DNA of 64,000 nt from Epithemia pelagica (GCA_946965045.2 OX337228.1:6919077-6983076), one strand, 5' to 3'; counted from the stretch's first letter, positions 979-64,000 are shown. Notes: generated by a model from the letters alone, not told the origin. Made by a program: numbers and translations.

Positions 979-2415
979 ATGGCTCAACTCAAGAGAACTG
1001 CAAAATTGTTGTTGGAGACGACAAATGACTCGTTTATGGCCAATGGCTCCCAAGGATCCTTGTTATCGCGACTGACCGTGGCGGCCTTGCGTCTCAACAA
1101 TCATGCAATCGCCACGAACGCCATTTCCCATCGTCAAAATCAGTTTCGCAATGACATGAATCCTCTGGAAAGTTGTGCGATTGTACGAAATCTATTGCGC
1201 GCTGGAAATGGGACAGAGGCGTACCAAATCCTCGAGGAGGAATTGTCGTTGCCCATGATATCAACCAACGAGGACGAAACGACTGAAACACATTGCAATT
1301 TGTTAAAATTTCGAGCCCAAGCCCTGGCATCCATTGCCTCGTGGCATTTTTTCGGGGGAGAACCTCGAGCTGCAGTGTATGCGTGTCGTATAATGTGTGC
1401 CATGGGACCTGCTGTGCGCCAGGCAGAGATTTCGGGTTCGGAACTGGGAGTGCCCTTTTTGCGTCTCTTACAAGGCGCCAGTCAATGTCAATCCAAGATT
1501 CGTACAGGAGAAATAGTCAACGAGGCTTTCCTTGGCCCCAACAGCGAAAAAGTGAGCAAACTCCAAGTTCCCTGTAACGTAGTGTATGCCGTTTTGGATG
1601 TCATGATGACTTTACCTTCGGAAAATGACGACCGCGTCTACGAGGTACTTTCGAATGCCTTGGTACGCCGCGTTCTGTTTGTGACGGGGGCAGTCAACAT
1701 GGATGGTTGTCCTCCACCCGATCGAGGGGAAGCGGCCTTTATCGGAAGAAGCAATGTGGGCAAGAGTAGCCTGGTCAATGGCGTGACGAACCGCAAAGCA
1801 CTGGCCTATACTAGCAAACGACCCGGCAAGACACAACAGTTCAACTTTTTTGCCGTCAATGACAAGGTCGGTAGAGAACAAGAAATCAAATACGGCGACA
1901 TGGTGCATGGAAGCAAGGATGCAGATTCGTTCTATATGGTAGACGTAAGTGAAATTGCTGTTTCGTGGACATCTGGAAAGAGCGCTCGTTCTCACACGTG
2001 CTGCTTCTACCAGCTCTCCGGATTTGGCTACGCCAGGGTACCAGAGAAACAACGCCAAGAATGGTCCTCCTTTATGCAAGATTACATTGCAACTCGCCCA
2101 ACCCTTCGAGTCTTGTTTCACTTGATTGATAGTAGGCATGGTCCAACTGAAGAGGATGCCGCTATTATGAAGCAAGTCGAGGAAAACATTCCTCCCACAG
2201 CCAAATATGTAATTGTCCTAACAAAGGCGGATAAGAATAGCAAAGGAGCACCGGGAAACTATTCTGGAAAGGTATCCAACGATGTCATGAACAAGCTGCG
2301 CCAGGTAATGGGAGAAACGTTACAGCATGATGTTCCTGTTGTTTTGACATCGGCGGAAAGCAAGCTCGGCAGAGATAAAATGTGGAGCTATCTTCGCCGT
2401 GCTGCCATTTCCTAA
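979..2415 (+). CDS. engB: EngB/YihA-family GTPase lacking the N-terminal presequence (intron 1945-2013)
   Basis: G1 GRSNVGKSS, switch I SKRPGKTQ, G3 DLSG after splicing GTAAGT..CAG, G4 TKADK. The ATG at 979 comes from the duplication junction. The first ~120 aa seen in copy 2 are absent. Confidence 0.8.
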   Translation: MAQLKRTAKLLLETTNDSFMANGSQGSLLSRLTVAALRLNNHAIATNAISHRQNQFRNDMNPLESCAIVRNLLRAGNGTEAYQILEEELSLPMISTNEDETTETHCNLLKFRAQALASIASWHFFGGEPRAAVYACRIMCAMGPAVRQAEISGSELGVPFLRLLQGASQCQSKIRTGEIVNEAFLGPNSEKVSKLQVPCNVVYAVLDVMMTLPSENDDRVYEVLSNALVRRVLFVTGAVNMDGCPPPDRGEAAFIGRSNVGKSSLVNGVTNRKALAYTSKRPGKTQQFNFFAVNDKVGREQEIKYGDMVHGSKDADSFYMVDVSEIAVSWTSGKSARSHTCCFYQLSGFGYARVPEKQRQEWSSFMQDYIATRPTLRVLFHLIDSRHGPTEEDAAIMKQVEENIPPTAKYVIVLTKADKNSKGAPGNYSGKVSNDVMNKLRQVMGETLQHDVPVVLTSAESKLGRDKMWSYLRRAAIS

Positions 2416-2443
2416 ACTGTGGCGCACGGTTCTCTTAAGTCTA

Positions 2444-3930
2444 TCAACTGGTTTCGGTCCCTTGTTTCCCCGACGACATGACCCAATCCGGCATGCGATT
2501 CAGTTTCCAATGACTCAGATCGACCTTGTTCCGTTCGGCCAGGGCAAGCACTTTCAAAAACAGCAGTGTTGCCGGTTCGGCATTGGAACCAATTTCTTCG
2601 CAGATAATGTTCAAAACAATCTCAAAGGCGTGATGTGACGGTGGATCATCGATATCGTACAGCATTTCGACCTTCGAACCTCGGTGGCATTCATTAACAG
2701 GGGAGTGGTAAGACTGTCCATTTTTACCAAGAGATCCCATGCTTTCTTGGACCAATATAGTTCCTCTGGGGGCGTTTCTCCTTTTTGCTTAGCTTCTTGC
2801 CAATAAGCCCATAGGACACGTTTGTAGTCGGCTCCTTTTACTTGTACACCCAATCAGGGTTCGCAGCTACAAGTGCGCCAGCCATGTCGTAAAGTGTTGT
2901 CCCACTTGCGGAGGAGAAATGAGGGTGAGCAGCGTCGTATGTTGCGAGGTGCTGGTTAATGACTCCGACTTGGACATGGACGAATCCAGCAAGGCCATGA
3001 CAAATTCCACGTCACTGACAGAGTTTCGATCGGATTTGGGTGTGTCGCATAATAATGGCAGAGCAGATGTTTGCACTGTTCAAGGTACCACCCAGACAGA
3101 GGAACTGGAGGACTTTTTCGGTTTGCGAGGCATCCAAAATGGTAAAGGTGGGATCTTGTTTGAGTGCAATGTCCAAGAGCTCGATAAAGCGTTCCGAAGC
3201 CTCTCGACAATATTCGGGCAAGGTGAATCCAATTCCTGCCGGAGTGGATTACGACGATGTGGTTGTTGAGCTTGGAGCAAACGGGCAAACGAAAAGAGCA
3301 TGGGTCGCAACACGTTGAGAGTGGTGGATTGTCCCACTTTGGTATACTCGTGAATCGCCGTATCCGATTTGGAGTTTTTCGGATTGTCGTCTGGTTTCGA
3401 TTCAGAGTCTGCTTCTTCTTCCTCTTCTTTTTGTGCACGACCGGTCAAAAAGTTGACAATGCTGGATGCGGTGCAACCCTCGAAGAGCCGCCAGTGCCAA
3501 ATCCAAGAGTTGCATTTGAGTTCGTCTCTGTTTTCGGTAGGTGGTTCGTCGTCAAGGGAAAGCTTTGGTTTGGACGACACAGCCCCATCTCGCACAAAGG
3601 ACTCGAATCATATGGTCCTCTCGACTGTGCACCACGGCACTCTTTTCAATGGCAACTTGCGCCTTGCAAATCGCTTCGTCGAATGATTTGGAGGCACCAT
3701 CAAAGTCACCTTGCTTCAGAAGCGCCCGACCATGTCGTGTTAAGAGTTTCACTTCGAGCGGTGGCCCCCATCTCTAGAGAAATGCTCTCCGTTTTTGGAA
3801 ATGTGCTTAAGGCCATCACGGCAATCACAGGCCGACACTTCGAATAGACCCCATCATTAACAGTGAGGCTGCTCGTTTCGAATGGAGAACTGCTAACAAA
3901 TCTCCCAATTGGATACAAGCTGGGCTTTCG
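2444..3930 (-). pseudogene. TPR-like-motif protein pseudogene, copy 1
   Basis: TPR-like helix pair KLLTRHGRALLKQGDFDGASKSFDEAI, then a 1-nt frameshift (ctt-t-gtg) and in-frame stops (e.g. KLCQ*RGICHG). Fragments spread over several frames. Confidence 0.55.
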
Positions 3931-3978
3931 GATAGCATTCTAATACCATGGTATAATGGCGAATTGAAGCCCCGTAGT

Positions 3979-4020
3979 CACCTTTCATGTAGCACCTTTC
4001 ATGAAGCACCTTTCATGTAG
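3979..4020 (+). repeat. 14-bp tandem repeat CACCTTTCATG(T/A)AG x3
   Basis: Units at 3979, 3993, 4007. Confidence 0.95.
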
Positions 4021-4317
4021 CATCGACGAGCGTCTTCCTTGATTGCCGCAATGGAATTCTTCATCTCCATTCTTGCGACCGTGTCACGATGCCCCTCTGG
4101 TTGATTGTTGCGCCGAACTCCGTTGCCCTCGAGGAACGTGTTGTTGCCGTAGAGGTGCGTGCAAGACTGCCCCGACGGTTGATTGTTGCACTGTGTTAAA
4201 CCGACCCCGCTGCCTCGCAGCTCCAGGGTCCGATCGCCAATCAACACGAAACGCCAACAACAACACGCAACAATCCAACACGCACAAAAAACAAATACGA
4301 ACGAAATACGATTGACC

Positions 4318-5238
4318 ATGATGATGTGTGATTGTAATTACTGTTACGAAAAGATGATCAGCTCCGAATGGGCTCTGTTAGTTGCTCCTTTTGTGGTTCT
4401 CATACTGTGTTACGGTGTCGCTGATGTCCTCGATGAGGCGAAACTTATCGTCCAACACCTGTTTCGGGTCATTTTCAGCAAGAAAAGTCGTACTACAAGT
4501 AGCGAGCATACGGAGCTTCGACACGAACATGCGGAGCTTCGACAGCTTCGACACGACAAAGCTCAGCTTCAACAACAGCTGGCCATTGCCGAAGCTAAGC
4601 AACAAAAAGAAATTGCAGCGAAGGATGGAGCCTACAAGAAGCTTCGTCGCGAGAATGCGGCGCTTCGAGTGAGGAAAGTGCGGTCTGGCCGAAAGCTTCG
4701 ACGCGAAAATGCTCAGCTTCAACAACAGCTTGCTGTTGCCGAAGCAAAGCTTGCTGCGAAGCAACGCGAGAATGGTCGCCACGAGGATGGAGAGATCGAG
4801 ATTCGCGATCGCGAGGAGGAGGTCGACGTCGACACTGTTGCTGTTCTGCCTTGCGAGTTCGACGCTGACTTGGACTTCCCTCCTCTCGCACTCGCAGACG
4901 ATCTCGAGGACGACGAGGAGACCCCTCTAGTTCCAGTGGACCGTCCTGAGCCTGAACCCGCGCTCATCCCCGACAACGACGACGAAATCACTTTGGGGCA
5001 CGACTCACCCCCTCGAAAGTCCACCCCTCCTTCCCCCTACCCCACCCCCACTGAAAAAGATACCTCGCCTCAGATGGATGAGAATGCCCCCCAGAGCGTG
5101 ATCGAGAGTTCCGCCGGCCCCGAGAACACCCCACATTTGGGCAGAATCCTTACTGTTGCCTACTCCAAAAAGGCACGCCGAATGGTTCACGTTCGACGAT
5201 CCGCTCGTCTTTTGTCAGCGGGTACGGGTAAAAAATAG
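4318..5238 (+). CDS. Orphan 306-aa protein: hydrophobic helix, repeated coiled coil, acidic/Pro region, basic C-terminus RRSARLLSA
   Basis: Intact ORF in both duplicate copies. Hydrophobic segment WALLVAPFVVLILCYGVA; internal repeat (K/E)AQLQQQLA(I/V)AEAK. Confidence 0.7.
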   Translation: MMMCDCNYCYEKMISSEWALLVAPFVVLILCYGVADVLDEAKLIVQHLFRVIFSKKSRTTSSEHTELRHEHAELRQLRHDKAQLQQQLAIAEAKQQKEIAAKDGAYKKLRRENAALRVRKVRSGRKLRRENAQLQQQLAVAEAKLAAKQRENGRHEDGEIEIRDREEEVDVDTVAVLPCEFDADLDFPPLALADDLEDDEETPLVPVDRPEPEPALIPDNDDEITLGHDSPPRKSTPPSPYPTPTEKDTSPQMDENAPQSVIESSAGPENTPHLGRILTVAYSKKARRMVHVRRSARLLSAGTGKK

Positions 5239-5478
5239 AAAAACAGAAAAATAACATGTCGGTTGTCGGTTGCCAGTGGTACGTGCGCACGTTCGTGTCG
5301 GTTATGAATCTTTCCATACTCTCACTCTACCCCTTCTTCTGTTTCTAGCGATTGCAAAATTCTACTCCTACTCCTACATCAGCTGAGTCTAGCTCGAGTC
5401 CTTGTCGGAGATGTCCTTGTTGGTTTGTTGGTTTGTTGGTGTGTTGGTTGTCGGTGTGTTGGTTGTCGGTGTTATCAC

Positions 5479-5895
5479 AAAACCCTGGTGGCACGAGGAC
5501 TTTGTCCTTGTGTCATCAGGTATGGCATGGAGACTTCGGTCTCTGTGCCATTTGGGAAGAGTGCCATAGTTGCCCCTGGAGAATCCATTGATTCCTCCAG
5601 GCTTCCCAAATTTCACAAAATCCTGGTGGCACGAGGACTTTGTCCTTGTGTCACCAGGTATGGCATGGAGACTTCGGTCTCTGTGCCATCCCAAAATCCT
5701 GGTGGCACGAGGACTTTGTCCTTGTGTCACCAGGTATGGCATGGAGACTTCGGTCTCTGTGCCATCCCAAAATCCTGGTGGCACGAGGACTTTGTCCTTG
5801 TGTCACCAGGTATGGCATGGAGACTTCGGTCTCTGTGCCATTCGGGAAGAGTGCCATAGTTGCCCCTGGAGAATCCATTGATTCCTCCGCTTCCC
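5479..5895 (+). ncRNA. Array of 76-bp double-hairpin units (4 copies) with two copies of a third structured module; candidate structured RNA
   Basis: Units at 5479, 5617, 5693, 5769. H1 is a 17-bp stem with a TTT loop; H2 is a 13-bp stem with a C(TTCG)G loop. All non-Watson-Crick pairs in H1 and H2 are G-U on the + strand. Confidence 0.6.
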
Positions 5896-6436
5896 TACCC
5901 GCTGTATTTAAGTGTTGGGTTGATCGATAACGAGTGGATTAGTGTTTCGGCTAAAATGTTTCTATATAACATGTAGTGGTAACAATAGCAAGTGGAATTT
6001 TTGAACATGCACGACAACATTGCTGACTAGTGATTCCTAGGAGTAGTCGACAATCAGAGAGGATAAATGGTAATTGCTGTTTAAGTGGCTGAAGCTACTT
6101 CATGCGCTTCTTTGTGAGCTTTCTTGCCTTTCCTACACCAGAGCGACCCTTCTTTTTCCGGAAACTTGATGGTCCAAATCCATCATCCTATTCGTAGTCG
6201 ATCTCCCTTGGCGTATTGTCCCTTTCTTATCTTTCTCTCTTTTTCAAAACACCACCACCCTCAACTACGCTCTTTAGCACCTTCATACTTGGTTCTCGTT
6301 CATTCTGCGAAACCTTCTTATTTCCAGTGGCACTCTTGTATTTTGGTTTCTTCCGATTGGACAACACATCTTTTTGCGCTATGGTTCATCCTCTCTCATT
6401 GTGTCAAATCGCTCCATAGATGCAGTCGATCGTTGA

Positions 6437-6928
6437 GTGACCCAGAGAGGAGAAACCGTGGAATCCTTGCCACGCTTCCTGGATGATATATCGGTCTACT
6501 CTTTTTTGTCGCCTGCAAGTCTACTGGGACGCCAGGTATGTGGACGGTGGAACCATTGTCACGATCCATGGGTATTTGATTTCATGGAGCGACAAGTGGT
6601 GCCGCTTGCCAAGACTCTTGCACGTTCCGGATTGCGCATACCTTGTTCTGTGTGTTTCTCCATTCGGGCACGCTTTTCGCTTCGCGCTGCCGTTCCCATG
6701 GATCTGCATGAGAGGGATCCTCCTTGTTTTTGACCTCCACATAATTTGGCCATTCGTTGCTGTCGTCGTTTGCTGTTTGATATCCTCCATGACGGAACAT
6801 TCATGTTCCAGTGGCTTTGTCCCATACCGTTCGCGAGCGCTTGTTCTTTGGCAATGGAATTCCTCTCTCCCCCGCGCAAACGTTTCCCATTTCGTCTTGT
6901 TCTTTGCTTCTGGAGGAGGCTGGAATGA
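6437..6928 (+). pseudogene. F-box protein pseudogene, copy 1
   Basis: LPRFLDDISVYSFLSPASLLGRQVCGRW fits the F-box pattern LP..I.SFL...L..VC.RW. Early stop at 6733; the continuation is fragmented. Confidence 0.6.
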
Positions 6929-6949
6929 CCACGTACGTTGCGTGAGAGT

Positions 6950-7560
6950 CTGACAAACTGGACAAGAACACGAGGAACTCGACAATCGTCTGGCAGAGGC
7001 AGACGCACCATTGCCCCAGCGTCACTCGTTTCGTTGGGGAGTTGCCACACGGCCTCTACAAGAAACTGGGCACAACCACCATTGGAGGCGTTCTGGAGTA
7101 AACAAGCCTCGTCGACACGGTCAAAGTCGAACGCAGGGGTCCACGATGCTTTGAGTTTGCTGGTTTTTGTTTCTGGTCGATTGAGAGCATATCGACGAGG
7201 TGCGCAATCATGGCCAACAACCAATTTTTCAAATCCAAAAAGTGCCAAAGGTTCTCCGTTGGACGACACGGGCTGCCGAATTGGCGTTTCCATTGTCATT
7301 GGAGTTGCGCTTTCCGCTTCACGTTCCTGTTGTGAATTTTCCGATGCACTGGCACTTTCTTGGTCGTCCTCGACGGCAAGGCCGTCTTGGCATTCTGAAC
7401 CATCAATTCCTATAGTTCCTCCATATTGGTTGTCACAGCAGCAACCTTATGGGACACCAATTCTCCCGTGGCGAATTCCTGTGGAGAATGAATCCGTCTT
7501 GAGAAGGACAATTCCTTGCACCATGATATTCGAGATTTTATAAAACAAACACACACACTC
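6950..7560 (-). pseudogene. Decayed unknown gene, copy 1
   Basis: Minus-strand frames give SWTPAFDFDRVDEAC...VWQLP.ETSD...MVRLPLPDD, conserved with 17520-18260 despite many indels. Confidence 0.45.
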
Positions 7561-8469
7561 AAGTCCAACGAACATGGAGTAGTCGACCAAACTGATGACT
7601 GTGGATCTTTTGAGCGAGAAAAAGATCTGAAGGATACGTGTGTTGAAAAGATACGTGTCTTGTCTACAGTATGGGCTATTCTAGAGGAAAACCACAGAAA
7701 CTACCTATACTATGTTGTCGTATCGTCGACCGATTCACGAGCGACCCACTTCTGTCGTTCGAACTTGCGCGCCCACGCGAGGCGGCCCGGTGCGCGAAAT
7801 GTGCGACCAAAACTTGGTAGCAGCAGGAAACCCTCCAATTAGAAGGCATACGAGTAGTGTAGTTGCCCTTTGGAATCCGCTCGATAAGGAGTACACCTCC
7901 GTGTGGTTGATTCACACTCAAGACTCAATCTATCCTAACTAGTTCTCTGACTTTGATACCGACAGCAATGACGACTCGACGAGTTCGAGAAAGGACCGTT
8001 CTGCACAGGCGGTGGATTTGTGCCATAAGATTTCAAGTCGATTGGCGAGCTTGATAGACCAGCACAAAGAGGAGGAGGAGGAGAATGATGATGATGGCTG
8101 CTTGGAGAAGAAGGAAGATCCAGACCGTGTTGGTGATGGCCTTCGTTGGTCCACAGAGGCCGAGTTTCATGATCCGGACAATTCGTACGATATCAGGAGG
8201 ATGACAAGCCTGCACACGACGAGACCACAGTGAGTCTTTGAGGGCGTGCTCCAGAACGCGATGCAGAGTTTGAAGACAAGGTTCAAAACAAGAGTCGTCG
8301 TCAAGAGCAAAAGAAGACCCACCAAAAGAAAAGGCAAGACGCTCGGTTGGTGTCTTGTTTATTGAGAGTTTCGGAAAATCGTGACTCCTCCACAGTACTC
8401 AGTCGCCAACAAGCCTTGAGTCAGTCGATGCGCCCAATGGCTCAGACGACTTGTGGCCAGTGAAAAGCT

Positions 8470-8805
8470 GCGATTCTTTGATCGGAGTGCTGCGGATATT
8501 CGCAAGGCCTATATCGCAGCATGGTCACCCGTGTACATCCAGATCAAAATCACAATGTTCGAGCGGACCGTGCATTGCCTACAGTATTCTGTCGGATAAG
8601 AATCAACACAAAGCGTACGATGAAACCTGGAGCGTTCAGTCCTATGATGGATGGATGGATGGATGGATGGAATGATCGACAAACGCGGCTGGCTCAAACC
8701 ACACAAGCGACTCTCATGACAGTCGTACGACTTGTTACCATGGTCCAGAAAGTTGTAGGACCATTTGCCGTTCCTGTTGGAATTCTCGCGGCTGTTTTCC
8801 TTTGA
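8470..8805 (+). pseudogene. DnaJ (J-domain) protein pseudogene
   Basis: Across two frameshifts: ADIRKAY / RSMVTRVHPDQN (HPD motif) / IAYSILSDKNQHKAYD. A hydrophobic tail VVGPFAVPVGILAAVFL follows. Confidence 0.7.
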
Positions 8806-9037
8806 AGTTGGCGTTCCATACTGTTGGAGTCGGTTCATTGTCAAGTGGAATGGTTTTGTATCAGTATGAAACTCAAACATTCAAGTGAAGCCGTAGGAGA
8901 ACAACAAGGCATCTCATCCTCCTCCGACCATAGTACCAGATCCTATTACAAAAGCAGCACCACAGAGCAGCAGCGGTCCAATCTTGCATCAATTGGAACT
9001 GAATAATTTCACCTTGCAGGATGTGACACAACGCACA

Positions 9038-56438: not shown

Positions 56439-57325
56439 TAATCATTTTAAGTATTGCATGGTTATCAGTCGCAACAAGGGCATGTCTCTTTTTCGCTTTG
56501 GTCCATCATTTTTCGTTGCAGTGATCAAAACCATTCATTCCTTACCAGTTGAAATCACGAGAGGGAGGACAAAACGGGATACCTCTGTTGTGCATGCGAC
56601 AATTGTTGTTGTTTGTGTCCTGCTGAATTTGCCCTTCGTGTCGTGCTGCTAAACGAACAAGCTGGACGGCTGTTCTCATTGTTGTTGTTTGGTGTAACTG
56701 TGGTTGTTGTTCTTGTTGTTGTCGGCATTATCGTAGTACAATCGAGTGACTGTGTAGCCATTGATCCTTTCCCAGACAAGCCAGGAGTTTCGACATCTGT
56801 TGGTCGTGCTCCTTGTGTGGCTTGGTTCATGGTCTCTTGTGGTCAATGAATCCAACAGAAGGACGAAACGGGTGGATTCCAATGTCTGATGATGAGAGAA
56901 GCAGTAAGCGAAGGAATACTCAGACAGCGGTATCACTTACAGTAGGACTAGCTTGGACTCTCGAGGTGATCAAGCTCTTGAGGGCAAGCCAGTAGGACGG
57001 ATCTAGATCAGTTGTAACTCAATAGGACAATTTCTAAGATTGTGAGCAATAAACATGGTTAGTACATGTAGCACATGAGAATCACATGACAAGCACATGA
57101 GTAGCACATAGTCTAACCGACTGCACTTCGAGCCCCTGATACCCCAACCCGAACGCGTGCATGGCCAAAAAGCACTGCTCGCAAAATCAGAAGCCCAAAA
57201 ATACACTATGGAGACAATCAGTAGAAGCGTTTTTAGTTAAATATAAGACGGGACTTAGCGTAGAAAAACGCCAATGGACACATTCTCACTTTGACAGCCA
57301 ATTCCAACGGATGAACATCATCCAA

Positions 57326-57394
57326 CCCACCATGTAAGTATTATCCAAGCTTCTTTGATATATAGAGAAGCTTGGATAATACTTACATGGTGGG
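57326..57394. mobile_element. 69-bp foldback micro-MITE with a 5-bp target-site duplication
   Basis: Perfect 29-bp inverted arms (57326-57354 / 57366-57394), 11-nt spacer, TCCAA on both sides (57321-57325, 57395-57399). Confidence 0.85.
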
Positions 57395-57716
57395 TCCAAC
57401 ACCGGCAATGCCTCTCTAAATGGCTCGGAAAGAGAGACCCGTTCGGCCCATAATTTATGAGATCAGTATTCCGACCTGCTCGCACCCGACCATAAAATAT
57501 TTTCATATCCTTATATAACATTCCTTCGCAGTCGCCTTTCATTCGTCCATAAATTGTCATCTCGGAACTCAGATGCTTGGGCCTGTTTGCTCACAAATTG
57601 GACCCAAAGCATGGAGTGGGGATGACCGAAACACAACGAGACACTTGAACCGTCGTTCAATACACAACAGACTCTCCCGAACCTTACCAATACGGAAAGT
57701 TAATAGAGAAAGCAAC

Positions 57717-58337
57717 ATGGAACCCCGCGACCTAGGAGATGAGTTCTTCCATTGCCAGTATATCGATGAAAGCAAAACAGAGGAGGAAAATATCCAAGCA
57801 AAGGAAAATTTGGATCAAGACGGCCCTCCTTTGTCTCCCAACCTACAGACTCGACATCAGAGGAGTTGCGGAGGAACCTCCATCGCTTCATCCTACAATG
57901 AACGCAAACGCGTCGCAAGACTGTGCCGCGAATTTAGAAAGAAGACCACCAAACCGTGTTCCGTGTTTGGTTACGATCGATACCAGCGGTTTCGCGGCTT
58001 CTTCTTCTTTTGCAGCAATTGCAAGGATGCTGACGACAAGGAGAGAGATTCATCTGTCCGTGTCAACCGTACAACCAAGGATGGACCGTATACCTGCATG
58101 GCAGAACACGAGAGCATCATTTACCCAACTGACCGGATAAAGATTGAAATCAAGAAGCCTCACACAAGGACAAATTTGGGAAAGCCCACGAAGAAGAAAG
58201 CACCCCCCGACAGCAACAGAAAACGCAAGGACCCCCCAAACGAGGAAGATAGTACTTCTTCCAAAGCACAGAAAACCGAAGCAACAGCGGAAAGCGAAAC
58301 ATACTCGTGTTTTGAATCGTCGGATGAAGAGCCCTAA
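57717..58337 (+). CDS. Cys/His-motif protein (C-x2-C-x24-C-x3-H), probably 3'-truncated
   Basis: FFCSNC...YTCMAEH. The stop codon is the TAA of the CCCTAAGG junction at 58332. Confidence 0.55.
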   Translation: MEPRDLGDEFFHCQYIDESKTEEENIQAKENLDQDGPPLSPNLQTRHQRSCGGTSIASSYNERKRVARLCREFRKKTTKPCSVFGYDRYQRFRGFFFFCSNCKDADDKERDSSVRVNRTTKDGPYTCMAEHESIIYPTDRIKIEIKKPHTRTNLGKPTKKKAPPDSNRKRKDPPNEEDSTSSKAQKTEATAESETYSCFESSDEEP

Positions 58338-58510
58338 GGAGAAAGTGCCTGTCCGTAGGCCTACGTAGACTCTAGCGTCCCACTGCAGAACAGCCCCCAT
58401 CCCACTTGTCCCACTGTAGAGCCGCCCTCTGTCCCACTGCAGAAGTGCCCTGTCCCACTGCAGAACAGCCTGCTGTCCCACTGCAGAACAGCCCACTAGA
58501 ACAGCCCTAT
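58332..58510 (+). repeat. Element end, class A: CCCTAAGG plus five ~21-23-bp TGTCCCACTGCAGAACAGCCC repeats
   Basis: Units at about 58377, 58407, 58430, 58451, 58474; leader homologous to 59616. Confidence 0.85.
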
Positions 58511-58526
58511 TCTAGTCATACCTATG

Positions 58527-59075
58527 CCCTAAGGATATTTGCCTTTTTTGGGTGTCTTTAGTACTAGACACCGTAGGATTTGAACGTGTGCATATGAGCA
58601 CAAGTGGCTATAGTATCTGTGCATATGAGCACTGATATATATGCCTTTTGTTGCAAAAGAGCACTGCCCGTTGTGCAGATGAGCACAGAATGTCTATGCC
58701 CCGCTCAAGTCTTATTTCTAAGCACTCATATTCAATATGAGTGACTAATTTCATTGATTACTAACCATTACCACACTCTTAGTTGTTCCCCCATTCTTTG
58801 GCGCGAAAAGCTCGCCTGCGTGTCCCTTCGCGCCAAACATCTTCACCTGACAACCTTAATTGGCCCTAAGGATATTTCACTTTTTTGGGAGCTTTTAGTA
58901 CTAGAGACCGTAGAATTTGAACATCTGCATATGAGCACAAAATCCTATAGTGCCTGTTGCATATGAGCAAGGATTTGTTGCGGATGAGCTGCAATTTGTT
59001 ACGCTTTTGTTGCGATTGAGCAGTGGCCTTGTCTATGCCCCTTTGACCACTCCCCAAAAGCAGTCATATTCAATA
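58527..59075 (+). repeat. Two class-B element ends (58527, 58864): CCCTAAGG plus GTGCATATGAGCAC-type pseudo-palindromes
   Basis: ccctaaggatattt..ttttttggg..tttagtactaga.accgtag.atttgaac in both. Motif copies at 58588, 58619, 58673, 58925, 58957. Confidence 0.85.
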
Positions 59076-59268
59076 TGCTCTAAACTGGCCCAATACTTTT
59101 CAGAGCTCTGCCAGTTAGGTTTTTGTCTCGCCCTACTCTACATAGAAGAATCAAATTGGATAAACAGCAAAGAGTGTGGAGGCTAGTTTAGGTTTTTCTA
59201 TCCAAAGATTTTGGAGTGTTCTACTTCCCGCTCGCTAACTCGCGCGCCAGCAAGCCACTTTGGATTGA

Positions 59269-59616
59269 CTAATCTACATCCACTCGCACCCGGTCGCCAT
59301 TATCAACTACATCGGTGGTCAGGGCATCAACGATAGGGAGCTCCTCTAGGTTGCCGTCATCCACAATGAGCACTGGTGGAGTGTCTTTGGGAGTGCTGAA
59401 TGCAAATCTAGCTTGGAGCCCCCGTCTACGTCGTTCTTGGTAAGACATGGGCGGGATCGCATCAATGATGCTTTCACTCCTCATGTCTGTGCCCTGGTCC
59501 ATATTGTCATTTGCAGTTGATAGGTTGGTGGGGGAGATTGATGAGGAGGTTGTCCATGAAAAAACCGAGGACCTTGAGCTTGCCGAGGTAGTCGAAATCG
59601 GGCGGCAAAGGAGGAC
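59269..59616 (-). pseudogene. 3' fragment of an unknown gene, cut at the 59616 junction
   Basis: Open minus frame from the CCCTAAGG site to a stop at 59269 (..SYQERRRRGLQARFAFSTP..). Confidence 0.35.
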
Positions 59617-59810
59617 CCTAAGGAGAAAGTGCTCGTGCGTAGGCCCTCGTAGACTCTGTACTGCATATTTTCCCACCTGGGAACAGCCCCTGTCTCATAT
59701 TTTCCCACCTGGGAACAGCCCCTGTCTCATATTTTCCCACCTGGGAACAGCCCTCGTCCTCATATTTTCCCACCTGGGAACAGCCCCTTTCTCACTATAG
59801 AACAGCCCAC
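59616..59810 (+). repeat. Element end, class A: CCCTAAGG plus four 32-33-bp CATATTTTCCCACCTGGGAACAGCCC repeats
   Basis: Units at 59664, 59696, 59728, 59761. Confidence 0.9.
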
Positions 59811-60267
59811 CTTCCCCATATTTTCCAATTTGGGGTCGTATTCCCCCTCTGTTGTACAGCCCTCATCCCCAATATACTCCCAAGCCCATACATATTCAAG
59901 CTAGGATTTCCTAGATATAAGCTAGATCTATACACATGACTATCGATAGTATTAATTTTCTTCACTTGAAAATCTCATTTTTTGGTCATTGGGCCCAACA
60001 CCAGTCATTCTGTTCAAGATTTCTGGTGAATGACCCTCCTTTGGGCCTGTTGCCTTTGGGTATGTTTTCGCACGAGAATCATACATAGATGACTCGTCAC
60101 ATTCTGCTGGGTGACTTCATAGTTCCTCCTGCCGTGGTACATGCATGTTTGATTGTTGCCAACACACACCTCTATCAGCAATCAACCAGTATTGTGAATC
60201 TATGGTGAGTGCTTGATACCGAAAGCATCTATGATTCATCATTCTCCATTCCTATTTCTTACATCAG

Positions 60268-60921
60268 CTACTTTCTACTATTCACATTGGCACACAGGAA
60301 GGAGTTGTACGAGGGAATGTCACATGTCAGCTCCAGTAAAGTCTCTTCCAGGCTTGCTGCAGGTCTCGTTCTCTTGTGGACATGAAAAATAAGTCGCTTC
60401 AAGCACCTTTGAAGTGGGCAGTCTCTGGGCCCATGAGGAACATAGCCTGGTCTGTTGAAGGGCTCGAAACAGGCTAAACAGGCTTTGTTCTTGAGCACCC
60501 GAGAAACACTCACCGGACAGTTACTTCTTCGGTGGTTCGTTGATCCACAATTGAAACAGGATCCATAGTCAAGGCACTTCTCCCCATTGCATGTTGCATC
60601 CATGCAAACAACACATTGAACAATCAACAGTTGGATGCACTCTTCTGCCATGGACGTTTCAATGTCTTGTCGTCTGACTCTTTCGACTACTTGTGTCTGT
60701 CCACTCTCTTGGGCCTTTTTCCTACAGAAATCGCAAACCCCACAATGTGTTACACGAATGCCAAACTTCTGTGAAATATTTGCAACACAACAACCATGCT
60801 CTTGCAACAAATTTTTTATGGAAGCTGATCCAAATATGGCTTCGAAGCTTTTCCTTGGCCGCTCTCCAACAATCAACCGTTTTGCCTGAAGCGTCTTCAG
60901 GGTCATGTCCTCGTCCATGTC
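60268..60921 (-). pseudogene. C-terminal fragment of a RecQ-type (telomere-linked-helicase-like) protein, cut at the 60922 junction
   Basis: GCCVANISQKFG..HCGVCDFC resembles the RecQ zinc-binding CRR..L..YFG..CG.CD.C. It is followed by the CCHC knuckle CFNCGSTNHRRSNC and more Cys/His motifs. No helicase core present. Confidence 0.6.
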
Positions 60922-63411
60922 CCCTAAGGGTTTTGCTAGAAATCGACCTTTTTGTCGTGCGCACTAAGCTCATTCTGTAGAATCACATGCGCGACCACAA
61001 AAAGGTCAATTTTGAATCACTGTATTGTTGCGTGCAAAAATTTAATGCAACCACAAAAAGGTCGATTTCGACCACAAGAAGGTCGATTTGCAAACCTACA
61101 TTAACTCTCCATAGTAAACCATATTCCTTCTTGTCGCTCAAAGATTTTGAGGTGAATGATCTCTGGTGTTAGGGCCTTTTCAGTTTTTGAGGTGAATGAC
61201 CCTCTTTAGGGCCTCTTTTTTGGCTGCAAAGGGTCATACGTCCCAAACCTATTTTGACCATAGGAACGACAACAGCCACCATGGAGTTTGACGATTACTT
61301 GGGGCTTGTGGACTTTGCCACACCCTGTGGCTTGGTCTGTAAGCTCTGTGGTGGTGGTTTCCGAGCAAACATGAAGTGTCTTGCCCGCCACGCCAAGACC
61401 TGCTCCAAAATTCATGGGGTGTCCTTTCGCTTTCCTGGGAGACATCTTGGTAACAAAATACACACTCTTGTGGAGAATGCCAACAACCAACCGTTTGATT
61501 GTTTCATTCATGAGTCAAATGATACAAGAATCAAGTATTTCTGTAGTGACTGTGACAAGATGTTTCATGTGAAGCTTTTGTGCGAGAAGCACGTTGCTGG
61601 TTGTTGCGCTAGTGCCAAAGTCATTGCCAAGACTTTCCTCAAGCTGAAGTGTGGATGCTTCATGCCAAGGCCCCAAAGAGAAACCATGCAGCAAGAAACC
61701 AACTGGACCCCAATAATTCAAGTTGAGAATTCAACATTTACCATGCCGCTGCCCTGCAGCAGGTTACCCAACGAGTTTGCAAGTTCGATTGAACCATTAT
61801 TGCATCCAAGCGACACTTTGGGAAGGTGGCCCGATGTACTGAGTAATATGATTCCTGGCACGTTGGAGAATGCCCTTGGAGACATTGAACAAGGAATTAT
61901 GTTTGAAGCCGAGTATCATAAGAGAGGAAATAACACTGCAATCAACCGACTCTATCAGGTTGGTTGTTACCTTCTGGACAGGATGGCTTCGATCGTAATG
62001 GGGATTCCAGCAGACATTCGGAGTCGGATTGCTAAGTTTGCTTTCCATGATGGTGATGTGGATCACTCATGGAATTTCAGCCATCGACATGATTATGACA
62101 AACGAGTGAAACCTCTACTCCTCTCTCTCTTGTGTTTCCTGCATCAGAGGCAGTGGAAGAGATGGGACTATTTTTGCCACCAGGTTGAAGGTGATGGATT
62201 CTCTGTGGACACTGCATTCCAAAATTGTGTTCTTGGGTCACTCCTGACAGAGTTGGTACTCGACAATGAGATTTCTTCTTGGTCCGACTCAGGGGTAGTG
62301 TTACTGTTCTCTCGGCAGAGGTTGTTCACTAAGACGAAGAATGGCTTGAGGTTGAAATCATGTGGAGTTGCCGCTCAAGAACTCGGTGAGTCCCCCTTTC
62401 CCCCTGTCAATGAATATACTTGGTTGTTCAAATCTCATGTCTTCTTTCATCTCTTTCTAGCTGACCTTTTACATCTGCTTCGCTGTGGGGTTGCGGCTGG
62501 CTTAAAGTACTACGATGGGCAGGGCAAGTTGGTCGAGCAGGTCATGGAACGGTACAGACATTGTCCTACAATACACTTTCTCTGTCCTAAGATTTATTCT
62601 TTGAGGAAGCAATATCAAGAGAAGCCTCCTAAAAGGGAGGTTGTGGTCGATGAGTTCTTCAATATCATTGTTGATGGACATGCATTCCAAAAAGCACATT
62701 GGTCTAAGGTCGTTCCTACGGTTGTGGAAAAGGCCCATGGTATTTTTGATGCATGCTTTGTCGGAAAGGCATCCGAGAAATTCCTCTGCTTAGATGGTGA
62801 CTTGACTATTGTGGAGTGGTCCAAGGGTTTGGGATCGCTGCCAGATGGTACCAACACACAAGATTTGGAATGCAAGGAACTGGTGAAAAGTCAGTTCGAA
62901 CGACTAACTGCCTTGATGGAATTTGCCATCCACGGTTTTGGCTGTGGTGCAGATCGGTTCTCAGAGGTCCATTGTCTCGATGTGACTCAGCTTCGGTGGA
63001 AAAATACAAACTACCAAGATTTATATGTTTCTGCACCGAGTCGTAAACAACCCAAACTGCAAGCTTATGATCGACCCCCCGTTGAACACAAGATGCCTCG
63101 GATCATAGCAAGGTGTCTATTTCTCTACAGAGTTGTGGTGCTGAAAGTTTGGAATGGGCCCAATGCAAGGAGATTTTTTCCACAATATGGTAATGACCGG
63201 AGGTTTTTCTTTGAGGATGTTGCCCAAGAGATTTTCAGCTTGGATAGTCGTCCTGGTTCGGTGGTTGTTCGACAGTTCTGGACTTCTCTTGTGAACTTGC
63301 TCTTTCCAGACAGCAACAGTCAGGCATTGGTCTCTTCAACAGCATTGAGTGAGTTGAGTAAGCACTCCCAACAGACTGCAATGTCCAACTACCAGACACG
63401 CGTGAGCAACA
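60922..63411 (+). mobile_element. Tyrosine-recombinase-encoding element, left end intact, right part replaced by telomere
   Basis: CCCTAAGGG terminus; subterminal ACCACAAAAAGGTCGATTT motif as 1 inverted (60940) and 3 direct copies (60994, 61050, 61071); long ORF. Confidence 0.7.
61281..63411 (+). CDS. ~685-aa zinc-finger plus tyrosine-recombinase-like protein with no stop codon (intron 62386-62460)
   Basis: GCCACCATGG start; CKLC..H..C and CSDCDKMF..KHV..C fingers; HGFGCGADRFSE (R), SRKQ (K), VRQFW (R), SKHSQQTAMSNY (H, Y at 63390). My codon-by-codon translation is open into the telomere. Confidence 0.75.
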
Positions 63412-64000
63412 TTAGGGTTAGGGTTAGGGTTAGGTTTAGGGTTAGGTTTAGGGTTAGGGTTAGGGTTAGGGTTAGGGTTAGGGTTAGGGTTAGGGTTAGG
63501 GTTAGGGTTAGGGTTAGGGTTAGGGTTAGGGTTAGGGTTAGGGTTAGGGTTAGGGTTAGGGTTAGGGTTAGGGTTAGGGTTAGGGTTAGGGTTAGGGTTA
63601 GGGTTAGGGTTAGGGTTAGGGTTAGGGTTAGGGTTAGGGTTAGGGTTAGGGTTAGGGTTAGGGTTAGGGTTAGGGTTAGGGTTAGGGTTAGGGTTAGGGT
63701 TAGGGTTAGGGTTAGGGTTAGGGTTAGGGTTAGGGTTAGGGTTAGGGTTAGGGTTAGGGTTAGGGTTAGGGTTAGGGTTAGGGTTAGGGTTAGGGTTAGG
63801 GTTAGGGTTAGGGTTAGGGTTAGGGTTAGGGTTAGGGTTAGGGTTAGGGTTAGGGTTAGGGTTAGGGTTAGGGTTAGGGTTAGGGTTAGGGTTAGGGTTA
63901 GGGTTAGGGTTAGGGTTAGGGTTAGGGTTAGGGTTAGGGTTAGGGTTAGGGTTAGGGTTAGGGTTAGGGTTAGGGTTAGGGTTAGGGTTAGGGTTAGGGT
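63412..64000 (+). repeat. Telomere (TTAGGG)n, about 98 units, with two TTAGGT variants near the junction
   Basis: Seen directly; variant units at about 63430-63450. Confidence 0.99.

Follow-up and report, generated by a model that had tools for sequence, protein, structure and literature searches.

A pile of cut-short telomere-linked helicase elements at a chromosome end of Epithemia pelagica

We analysed a stretch of 64,000 nucleotides (nt) of Epithemia pelagica DNA (GCA_946965045.2 OX337228.1:6919077-6983076), hereafter called the window, which ends in a (TTAGGG)n telomere. Directly proximal to this telomere, and spread over 2.6 kb, lie five copies of the motif CCCTAAGG, all on the plus strand, at 58332, 58527, 58864, 59616 and 60922. 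The motif is found nowhere else in the window on either strand. Since the telomere closes the window from 63412 onwards, the cluster belongs to the last 5 kb of the chromosome. These 5 kb are a pile of cut-short telomere-linked helicase (TLH) elements, in which the tip of each element is joined to CCC within the stump of the previous one. An earlier reading of the window by a model, the original prediction, had reported the five same-strand motifs and their absence elsewhere, and a recount agrees with it. When the window was shuffled 100 times with dinucleotides preserved and both strands counted, the motif occurred 0.88 times on average and four times at most, and no shuffle gave five copies. 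The clustering is real and lies far beyond chance. The motif contains a single telomere unit, the orientation of which is inverted relative to the telomere.

The five ends at the chromosome terminus

Each motif is followed by an element end, and alignment bears out the predicted classes A, B, B, A and C. The ends at 58332 and 59616 have about 42 nt in common after the motif (classes A and A'), those at 58527 and 58864 about 100 nt (classes B and B'), and the end after 60922 is unlike either (class C). Each class has its own subterminal repeats beside the tip. From the interior towards the telomere, the region consists of the following features.

57717-58331, plus strand: sequence to the left of the oldest joint; an open reading frame that uses the TAA in the first motif as its stop
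58332-58526, plus strand: unit 1, class A end fragment; motif 58332-58339; cut at CCC by unit 2
58527-58863, plus strand: unit 2, class B end fragment; motif 58527-58534; cut at CCC by unit 3
58864-59154, plus strand: unit 3, class B' end fragment; motif 58864-58871
59150-59154: joint lacking the motif; the B' end and an unrelated multi-copy segment overlap here by 5 nt, ATCAA; loose ends on both sides in three runs
59155-59615, minus strand: repeated segment with a minus-strand reading frame; cut at CCCT by unit 4
59616-60921, minus strand: unit 4, class A'; motif 59616-59623; four copies of a 32-nt repeat at 59664-59794
60922-63411, plus strand: unit 5, class C; motif 60922-60929; gene 61281-63411
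63412-64000, plus strand: telomere, (TTAGGG)n, about 98 units

A search with a unique gene of the window led to contig L008, the end of ctg1309l in an ENA assembly, which is 100% identical to the window over 21 kb. Because L008 comes from the same assembly as contigs L001, L002 and L003, these three represent other chromosome ends of the same genome. No allele with another stack came to light, as the one record found for the locus is identical to the window.

Most of the units have close relatives on L001. Unit 1, with a 12-nt palindrome (58354-58365) and five copies of a 19-nt repeat (58377-58493), is 97% identical to L001 6378-6576, and its unbroken copies run on as CCCATGCTTA. Unit 2, with four 13-nt TGCATATGAGCAC-like repeats, is 96% identical to L001 12745-13084, and its unbroken copies run on as CCCAACAAAA. 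Unit 3 matches L001 15073-15363 with 97.6% identity, and there a gene for a 1307-residue recombinase-helicase follows 650 nt downstream. Unit 5 matches L001 9634-12131 with 99% identity; in that copy, a helicase follows within the same gene. The subterminal repeat of class C, a putative binding-site-like sequence of 19 nt, is present as one inverted copy at 60940-60958, 10 nt past the tip, and as three direct copies at 60994-61089.

Three left flanks had been described as coding sequences cut at the motif, and they differ in how well this can be upheld. The one at 60268-60921 (minus strand, in unit 4) is the real 3' part of a helicase gene, comprising the RecQ zinc region and a CCHC knuckle; it is truncated on its 5' side and is 45% identical to residues 698-916 of the minus-strand helicase of L001. 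For the flank at 59269-59616, the break could be verified, since the segment exists unbroken in other reads, with copies that extend past 59619 in runs X9, X10 and X1, but the frame itself (59272-59676) has no Pfam match and no family relative. The flank at 57717-58337 (plus strand) does take its stop from the motif, but its frame (57717-58334) likewise has no Pfam match and no family relative. About 940 nt proximal to the first joint there is a perfect 30-nt inverted repeat with an 11-nt loop (57325-57395).

At the joint 59150-59154, both unbroken partners are seen in reads, which indicates that ordinary microhomology joining also reshapes this chromosome end.

The position of the tip relative to the gene depends on the class. 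In classes A and A', the end is always located some 340-650 nt past the stop codon of a helicase gene on the minus strand, and this gene is truncated to a different length in four independent units. In classes B, B' and C, the end precedes a plus-strand gene by 360-650 nt. Either side of the gene is thus a possible place for the tip. Between the class A gene and the B, B' and C genes, identity is 26-32%, and no full-length class A copy was found. We considered whether class A is the right end of B or C elements and rejected this, as L001-L003 contain no inverted copies, and the terminal B and B' copies end distally in tandem repeats that have been healed at GGG.

The first telomere units (63412-63460) include TTAGGT variants, and the contig of a relative, L006, terminates in a regular alternation of TTAGGG and TTAGGT (6244-6298). 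The summed contig word depth over 58200-63380 is about 200-300 in the A' unit, 1,500-5,000 in class C, and 5,000-9,000 in the A and B ends; these differences hint at many copies genome-wide, although the depth figure is not a copy number.

The tip of the element and its target

Counting exact motifs together with variants that can be recognised by the sequence following them, the four chromosome ends contain 24 co-oriented joints, five in the window, nine in L001, eight in L002 and two in L003. The element body is on the telomere side in all 24, and TTAGGG arrays terminate L001 and L002 to the right of their joints. The accumulation at chromosome ends that had been proposed from the window alone is thus seen at three further ends of the same assembly. 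The variants affect either the first bases of the motif (GCCTAAGG, TCCTAAGG and CTCTAAGG) or its last two bases, and the latter are class-specific (CCCTAAGT and CCCTAATA). Two telomere units were found at none of the 24 joints. One additional exact motif, on the minus strand of L001 within a helicase gene, is probably a chance coding occurrence.

The motif marks true element termini, as had been claimed. Homology between copies starts exactly at the motif, and the left flanks of the 24 joints are all different. No copy shows homology leftward through the motif. Ends of the DDE type are also absent, as there are no terminal inverted repeats linking the ends of units and no target-site duplications at the joints.

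To read the target, an unbroken copy of each left flank was sought elsewhere and its continuation was compared with the motif. Such a reading was available for 11 joints.

Window 58527: unbroken flank continues CCCATG..., 3 bases shared with the motif
Window 58864: unbroken flank continues CCCAAC..., 3 bases shared
L001 436: unbroken flank continues CCCAAG..., 3 bases shared
L001 6379: unbroken flank continues CCCTAC..., 5 bases shared
L002 7909: unbroken flank continues CCCGCC..., 3 bases shared
L002 8363: unbroken flank continues CCCATC..., 3 bases shared
L002 9727: unbroken flank continues CCCTAC..., 5 bases shared
L002 10677: unbroken flank continues CCCTTG..., 4 bases shared
L003 7484: unbroken flank continues CCCTCT..., 4 bases shared
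Window 59616: CCCT, 4 bases shared; loose ends at 59619 in three runs
Window 60922: CCCT, 4 bases shared; contigs of other runs match only up to 60925, one of them with about 200 further letters off the window

All 11 unbroken targets have at least CCC (CCC, CCCT or CCCTA), for which the chance is 1 in 64 per joint. None of them has TAAGG, which must therefore come with the incoming element. The proposal that CCCTAAGG is a core common to element and target does not hold; it is the tip of the element, with only CCC at the target. The first base can be traced to the other side of the joint. At L002 7447, where the joint reads GCCTAAGG, the target reads GCCT, and joints with TCC and CTC were found as well. 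The GCC, TCC and CTC variants show that the first base or bases are derived from the target, and the joint at L002 7447 places the crossover within CC or CCC. A purine precedes the motif in 14 of the 16 joints with the exact sequence.

The tip was also found with related genes in other organisms. In a Logan contig from another run, CCCTAAGG forms the exact start, and the gene that follows after 227 nt encodes a protein with 33% identity to the class A helicase; such a start is expected if the assembly graph branches at the tip. In another metagenome contig, CCCTAAAG lies between a stump with a CCHC knuckle and the gene of that contig. In a third relative, about 600 nt separate the gene from a telomere-like array that follows it. 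Three other contigs, the flanks of which are short, have no motif upstream of the gene.

A mis-joining of repeats at a shared 8-mer during assembly could be suspected, because the region is highly repetitive and short-read contigs break at the joints. We consider this extremely improbable. Four contig ends share the same ordered architecture with different flanks and the same CCC rule, and have their telomere on the right; a long-read assembler would not be misled by anything as short as an 8-mer; and the same tip is present in contigs of other organisms.

The protein of the elements

The frame that starts at 61281 encodes 710 residues without a stop and runs into the telomere at 63412. An intron at 62386-62460 was considered and rejected, as the frame is open without one. 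In a word-indexed database, the only near relative is P0001, a protein with 98% identity that is located on L001. An exhaustive search gave 174 cluster representatives, many of them 1300-1600 residues long, which have in common the region of query residues 393-708. Full-length members have the DEAD and Helicase_C domains downstream of this conserved domain. Two zinc motifs of the form Cx2Cx12Hx3-4C were read by eye in the window translation. The window gene ends six residues after the conserved tyrosine of the domain, so the helicase has been lost from this copy. In three contigs of relatives from other organisms (L009 4531-6210, L010 4789-5775 and L004 6258-7280), a second open reading frame of 330-560 residues without a Pfam hit directly follows the helicase gene.

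Five residues of the conserved domain, R175, K205, R280, H311 and Y320, do not vary among 37 sequences with only 21-29% identity to the window domain. The numbers are alignment positions, and Y320 corresponds to protein residue 704. We take their spacing to resemble that of Cre and lambda integrase. The histidine of HxxR is not conserved among the aligned members. None of the 37 members has a Pfam match to Phage_integrase and its relatives at E-values up to 10, and the domain profile found no sequence-level match in the PDB.

An AlphaFold model of the domain, made for P0001:385-740, has a pLDDT of 87. When it was compared with the PDB using Foldseek, the list consisted almost entirely of tyrosine recombinases and topoisomerase IB enzymes, with weak E-values. 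In Swiss-Prot, the best structural matches are eight copies of the yeast Y'-Help1 protein, in the region upstream of its helicase (E 2e-5), followed by XerC/D/S and Flp. Among AlphaFold clusters, the matches are two diatom proteins and many proteins annotated as helicase or C2H2, the helicase-annotated ones at E-values of 1e-5 to 1e-4; from their accession numbers alone, the proteins with these annotations are presumably fungal. The TM-scores to Y'-Help1 and to the helicase-annotated matches are 0.4-0.5. As judged from the model, the catalytic-domain fold of tyrosine recombinases and topoisomerase IB is well supported, and catalysis by the domain is plausible. The earlier claim that these elements encode a recombinase is supported in that the protein has a tyrosine-recombinase-like domain. 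Given the structural matches, the same recombinase-like domain may also be present in the N-terminal half of the Y' protein.

None of the element proteins was found to contain a reverse transcriptase or RNase H domain, which sets them apart from telomeric or DIRS-type retroelements. This bears on an addition through RNA, in which the 3' end of the chromosome (...CCC) would prime on a transcript ending in ...CCUUAGGG and a host reverse transcriptase or telomerase would copy it. Such priming would use a pairing of 3-5 nt, and the A/A' gene indeed points towards the centromere, with its 3' end proximal and its 5' part truncated, as in HeT-A or Athena. However, no element encodes a reverse transcriptase, the B, B' and C units are attached by the 5' side of the gene, so that an antisense template would be needed, and the tip lies in repeat-rich DNA that does not look transcribed. 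We find this explanation very improbable, and we rejected addition of the Penelope-like or HeT-A type on account of the missing reverse transcriptase and the wrong gene orientation in classes B and C. Telomeric retrotransposons (HeT-A/TART, the Penelope-like Athena, MoTeR/FoTeR) likewise form head-to-tail piles of truncated copies with short telomere-related joints, but they depend on a reverse transcriptase, their own or a borrowed one, and are always attached by the 3' end, whereas the elements described here have none and bear a DNA tip on either side of the gene.

Serial terminal addition and its relation to telomere-linked helicases

In the window and in L001, L002 and L003, the distal remainder of a cut element never reappears downstream. 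L002 has class C copies cut at residue 35 and at residue 199, and L001 has one cut within the helicase; in each case, the remaining gene is absent downstream. It follows that each addition replaced everything distal to it, and that the pile grew by serial terminal additions, not by nested insertions. A complete insertion of the Crypton type, with two junctions, was not found at the four ends, where only the proximal junction is present. The distal boundary is not fixed. In the window, the telomere begins inside the class C gene; in L001 and L002, it begins at GGG in tandem repeats. Tandem repeats of 2-4 kb lie between the full-length B/B' genes and the telomere (L001 19587-22390, L002 15090-18801). 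In L003 7879-11205, copies of a class C', here with the tip variant CCCTAATA, have been rearranged through joints lacking the motif; part of the sequence is duplicated in tandem, residue 635 being joined to residue 21, and there is a deletion in the interior.

Taken as a whole, the original prediction is borne out in part. Chromosome ends do accumulate elements of recombinase type with a telomere-like tip, but neither the nesting nor an 8-bp target in common with the element can be upheld. The model that it proposed, circular tyrosine-recombinase elements that integrate at a CCCTAAGG core common to the target and nest into each other, would account for the recurrence of the motif, the recombinase-like domain and the cognate subterminal repeats of each class. 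With TAAGG lacking in 11 of 11 unbroken targets, no right-hand junction or return of an interrupted element at any of the four ends, and no interstitial telomere tract or circle junction seen, we give it very little credence.

We consider it probable that the chromosome end was built by serial terminal additions of TLH/Y'-type elements, the tip of each being joined by the recombinase-like domain. An element would extend from its fixed tip, (C)CCTAAGG, and the class-specific subterminal repeats through to the telomere. A new copy would be joined by its tip to a purine-CCC sequence within the resident terminal element, and everything distal to the joint would be replaced by the new element together with its telomere. 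Repeated rounds would yield a pile of stumps with one inverted telomere unit between each. The distal end would be eroded and then healed by telomerase, as would be the case in the window, where the telomere sits inside a gene. At the molecular level, the recombinase-like domain could cut donor and target at the motif's left edge and exchange one strand, and the two or three swapped bases (CC or CCC) would have to pair, which would constitute a homology test. Recombinases of the lambda type test homology through the pairing of swapped bases. The helicase might assist completion, be it through replication or copying or through an exchange of chromosome ends. Homology testing does not account for the conserved TAAGG, which may belong to the binding site of the protein or act as a telomerase seed, as the bottom-strand TTAGGG of the motif may serve as an outward-facing seed for a telomere or telomerase on a freed element. 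This mechanism is suggested by the base-precise donor end, the CC/CCC identity at the target, the single orientation, the distal replacement, the cognate repeats and the fusion of a recombinase-like domain to a helicase.

Several points weigh against it. Classical tyrosine recombinases need two half-sites and a shared core of 6-8 bp, and here the target shares only 2-5 bases and has no left half-site. The plan of the elements is not uniform, with A/A' ends 3' of the gene and B and C ends 5' of it, and joints lacking the motif exist (59150-59154; L003 9782). The terminal copy of the window, which is without a helicase, cannot be autonomous. No circular or free linear form was seen in Logan contigs, which bear out the unbroken targets but are unable to span joints or reveal free forms, and the reciprocal product was not searched for. 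Finally, host microhomology-mediated joining to a pre-cut end could give the same joints.

This last explanation deserves to be set out in full. In repair by the host, a broken or eroded chromosome end would be resected, and its 3' strand would anneal by CCC to the terminal GGG-3' of an existing discrete element end, on a free linear or nicked donor, and polymerase-theta-type end joining or break-induced replication would do the rest, the recombinase-like domain at most creating the donor end. A microhomology of 3-5 nt is typical of such joining, the GCC and TCC variants of the first base fit the trimming of an unpaired terminal base, plain microhomology is used at the two nearby joints lacking the motif, and the distal healing by telomerase shows that these ends break. 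On the other hand, the microhomology invariably consists of the CCC at the extreme tip and never lies elsewhere in the donor. TAAGG is kept across classes with proteins less than 30% identical, and in other organisms, a conservation that is not needed for microhomology alone. From a donor capped by a telomere, two or more units would be expected at some joints, but none of the 24 joints has them; a linear donor capped in this way is made unlikely by the same count. Moreover, a discrete donor end still requires a site-specific cutter. On balance, we regard host repair as a rather unlikely source of the joints, and joining by the recombinase-like domain as the preferred reading.

The elements have much in common with published TLH genes. 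These encode N-terminal zinc fingers, a 'TLH domain' of about 250-320 residues, the function of which is stated as unknown, and a RecQ-type helicase (bioRxiv 10.1101/2024.02.27.582403). The zinc motifs, middle domain and RecQ-like helicase described here correspond to this architecture. The position is also the same, as the TLH regions of fungi (Magnaporthe oryzae, Fusarium, Ustilago and S. pombe tlh1/2) and of the choanoflagellate Monosiga contain the last gene before the telomere; the window gene abuts the telomere at 63412, and the full-length genes of L001 and L002 lie 2.7-3.7 kb from theirs. Truncated, telomere-healed copies are found both in TLH regions and among the elements here. By its structural matches, the modelled middle domain qualifies as a homologue of the fungal or yeast TLH domain. 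In M. oryzae, the TLH region has a discrete proximal boundary, placed at either the first or the second C of CCTAACC, which is a telomere unit in reverse complement (PMC1635262). This is the same kind of joint as in the window, including the variable first C, and it was published without a mechanism. The elements differ from fungal TLH regions in that they occur in a diatom-like genome, where several families less than 30% identical are stacked as many short stumps, and in that their joints have a single inverted unit and no repeat array. The CCC target rule, a recombinase fold of the TLH domain and a link between TLH/YRF1 and tyrosine recombinases were not found in the literature searched, most subscription journals being outside that search.

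The Y' elements of S. cerevisiae, which encode Y'-Help1/YRF1, are likewise subtelomeric helicase elements present in tandem copies. Y' copies are separated by telomere repeats in the orientation of the telomere and spread by homologous recombination, and we know of no fixed joint with a single inverted unit for them. Cryptons are eukaryotic DNA elements with a tyrosine recombinase, known from fungi, stramenopiles and animals, which have no inverted terminal repeats and only a few bases of identity between element and target at their joints. Unlike the elements described here, which have one junction and a telomere distal to it, they form complete interstitial insertions with two junctions, and they have neither a helicase nor a link to telomeres. 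Joining of DNA with very little shared sequence, by exchange or transfer of one strand, is carried out by XerCD during the integration of CTX phage and by poxvirus topoisomerase IB. Tyrosine recombinase and topoisomerase IB folds both match our model, but these enzymes are bacterial or viral and have defined sites, so that the analogy is mechanistic only.

TLH and Y' genes are located at chromosome ends in yeasts, many fungi and one choanoflagellate, and they are switched on in telomere crisis. To our knowledge, neither their middle domain nor their spread has been explained so far. We tentatively propose, as a possibility with somewhat less than even chances, that TLH and Y' genes, which have been known for decades from fungi and yeast and are found here in a diatom, constitute one ancient superfamily of DNA mobile elements, in which the TLH domain would act as a functional tyrosine recombinase and attach the element with its telomere to damaged ends by means of the inverted-unit tip and a homology test of two or three bases. 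The base-fixed donor end, the CCC rule and the recombinase-like domain turn a descriptive puzzle into a testable mechanism. If true, these elements would add a class to the known DNA elements of eukaryotes and would be the recombinase-based equivalent of telomeric retrotransposons, with a site-specific enzyme that joins DNA to near-arbitrary ends. They would provide a telomerase-independent capping of ends, and they would link the subtelomeres of fungi, yeasts and stramenopiles. Our analysis suggests that the long-puzzling TLH genes belong to mobile DNA that re-caps chromosome ends.

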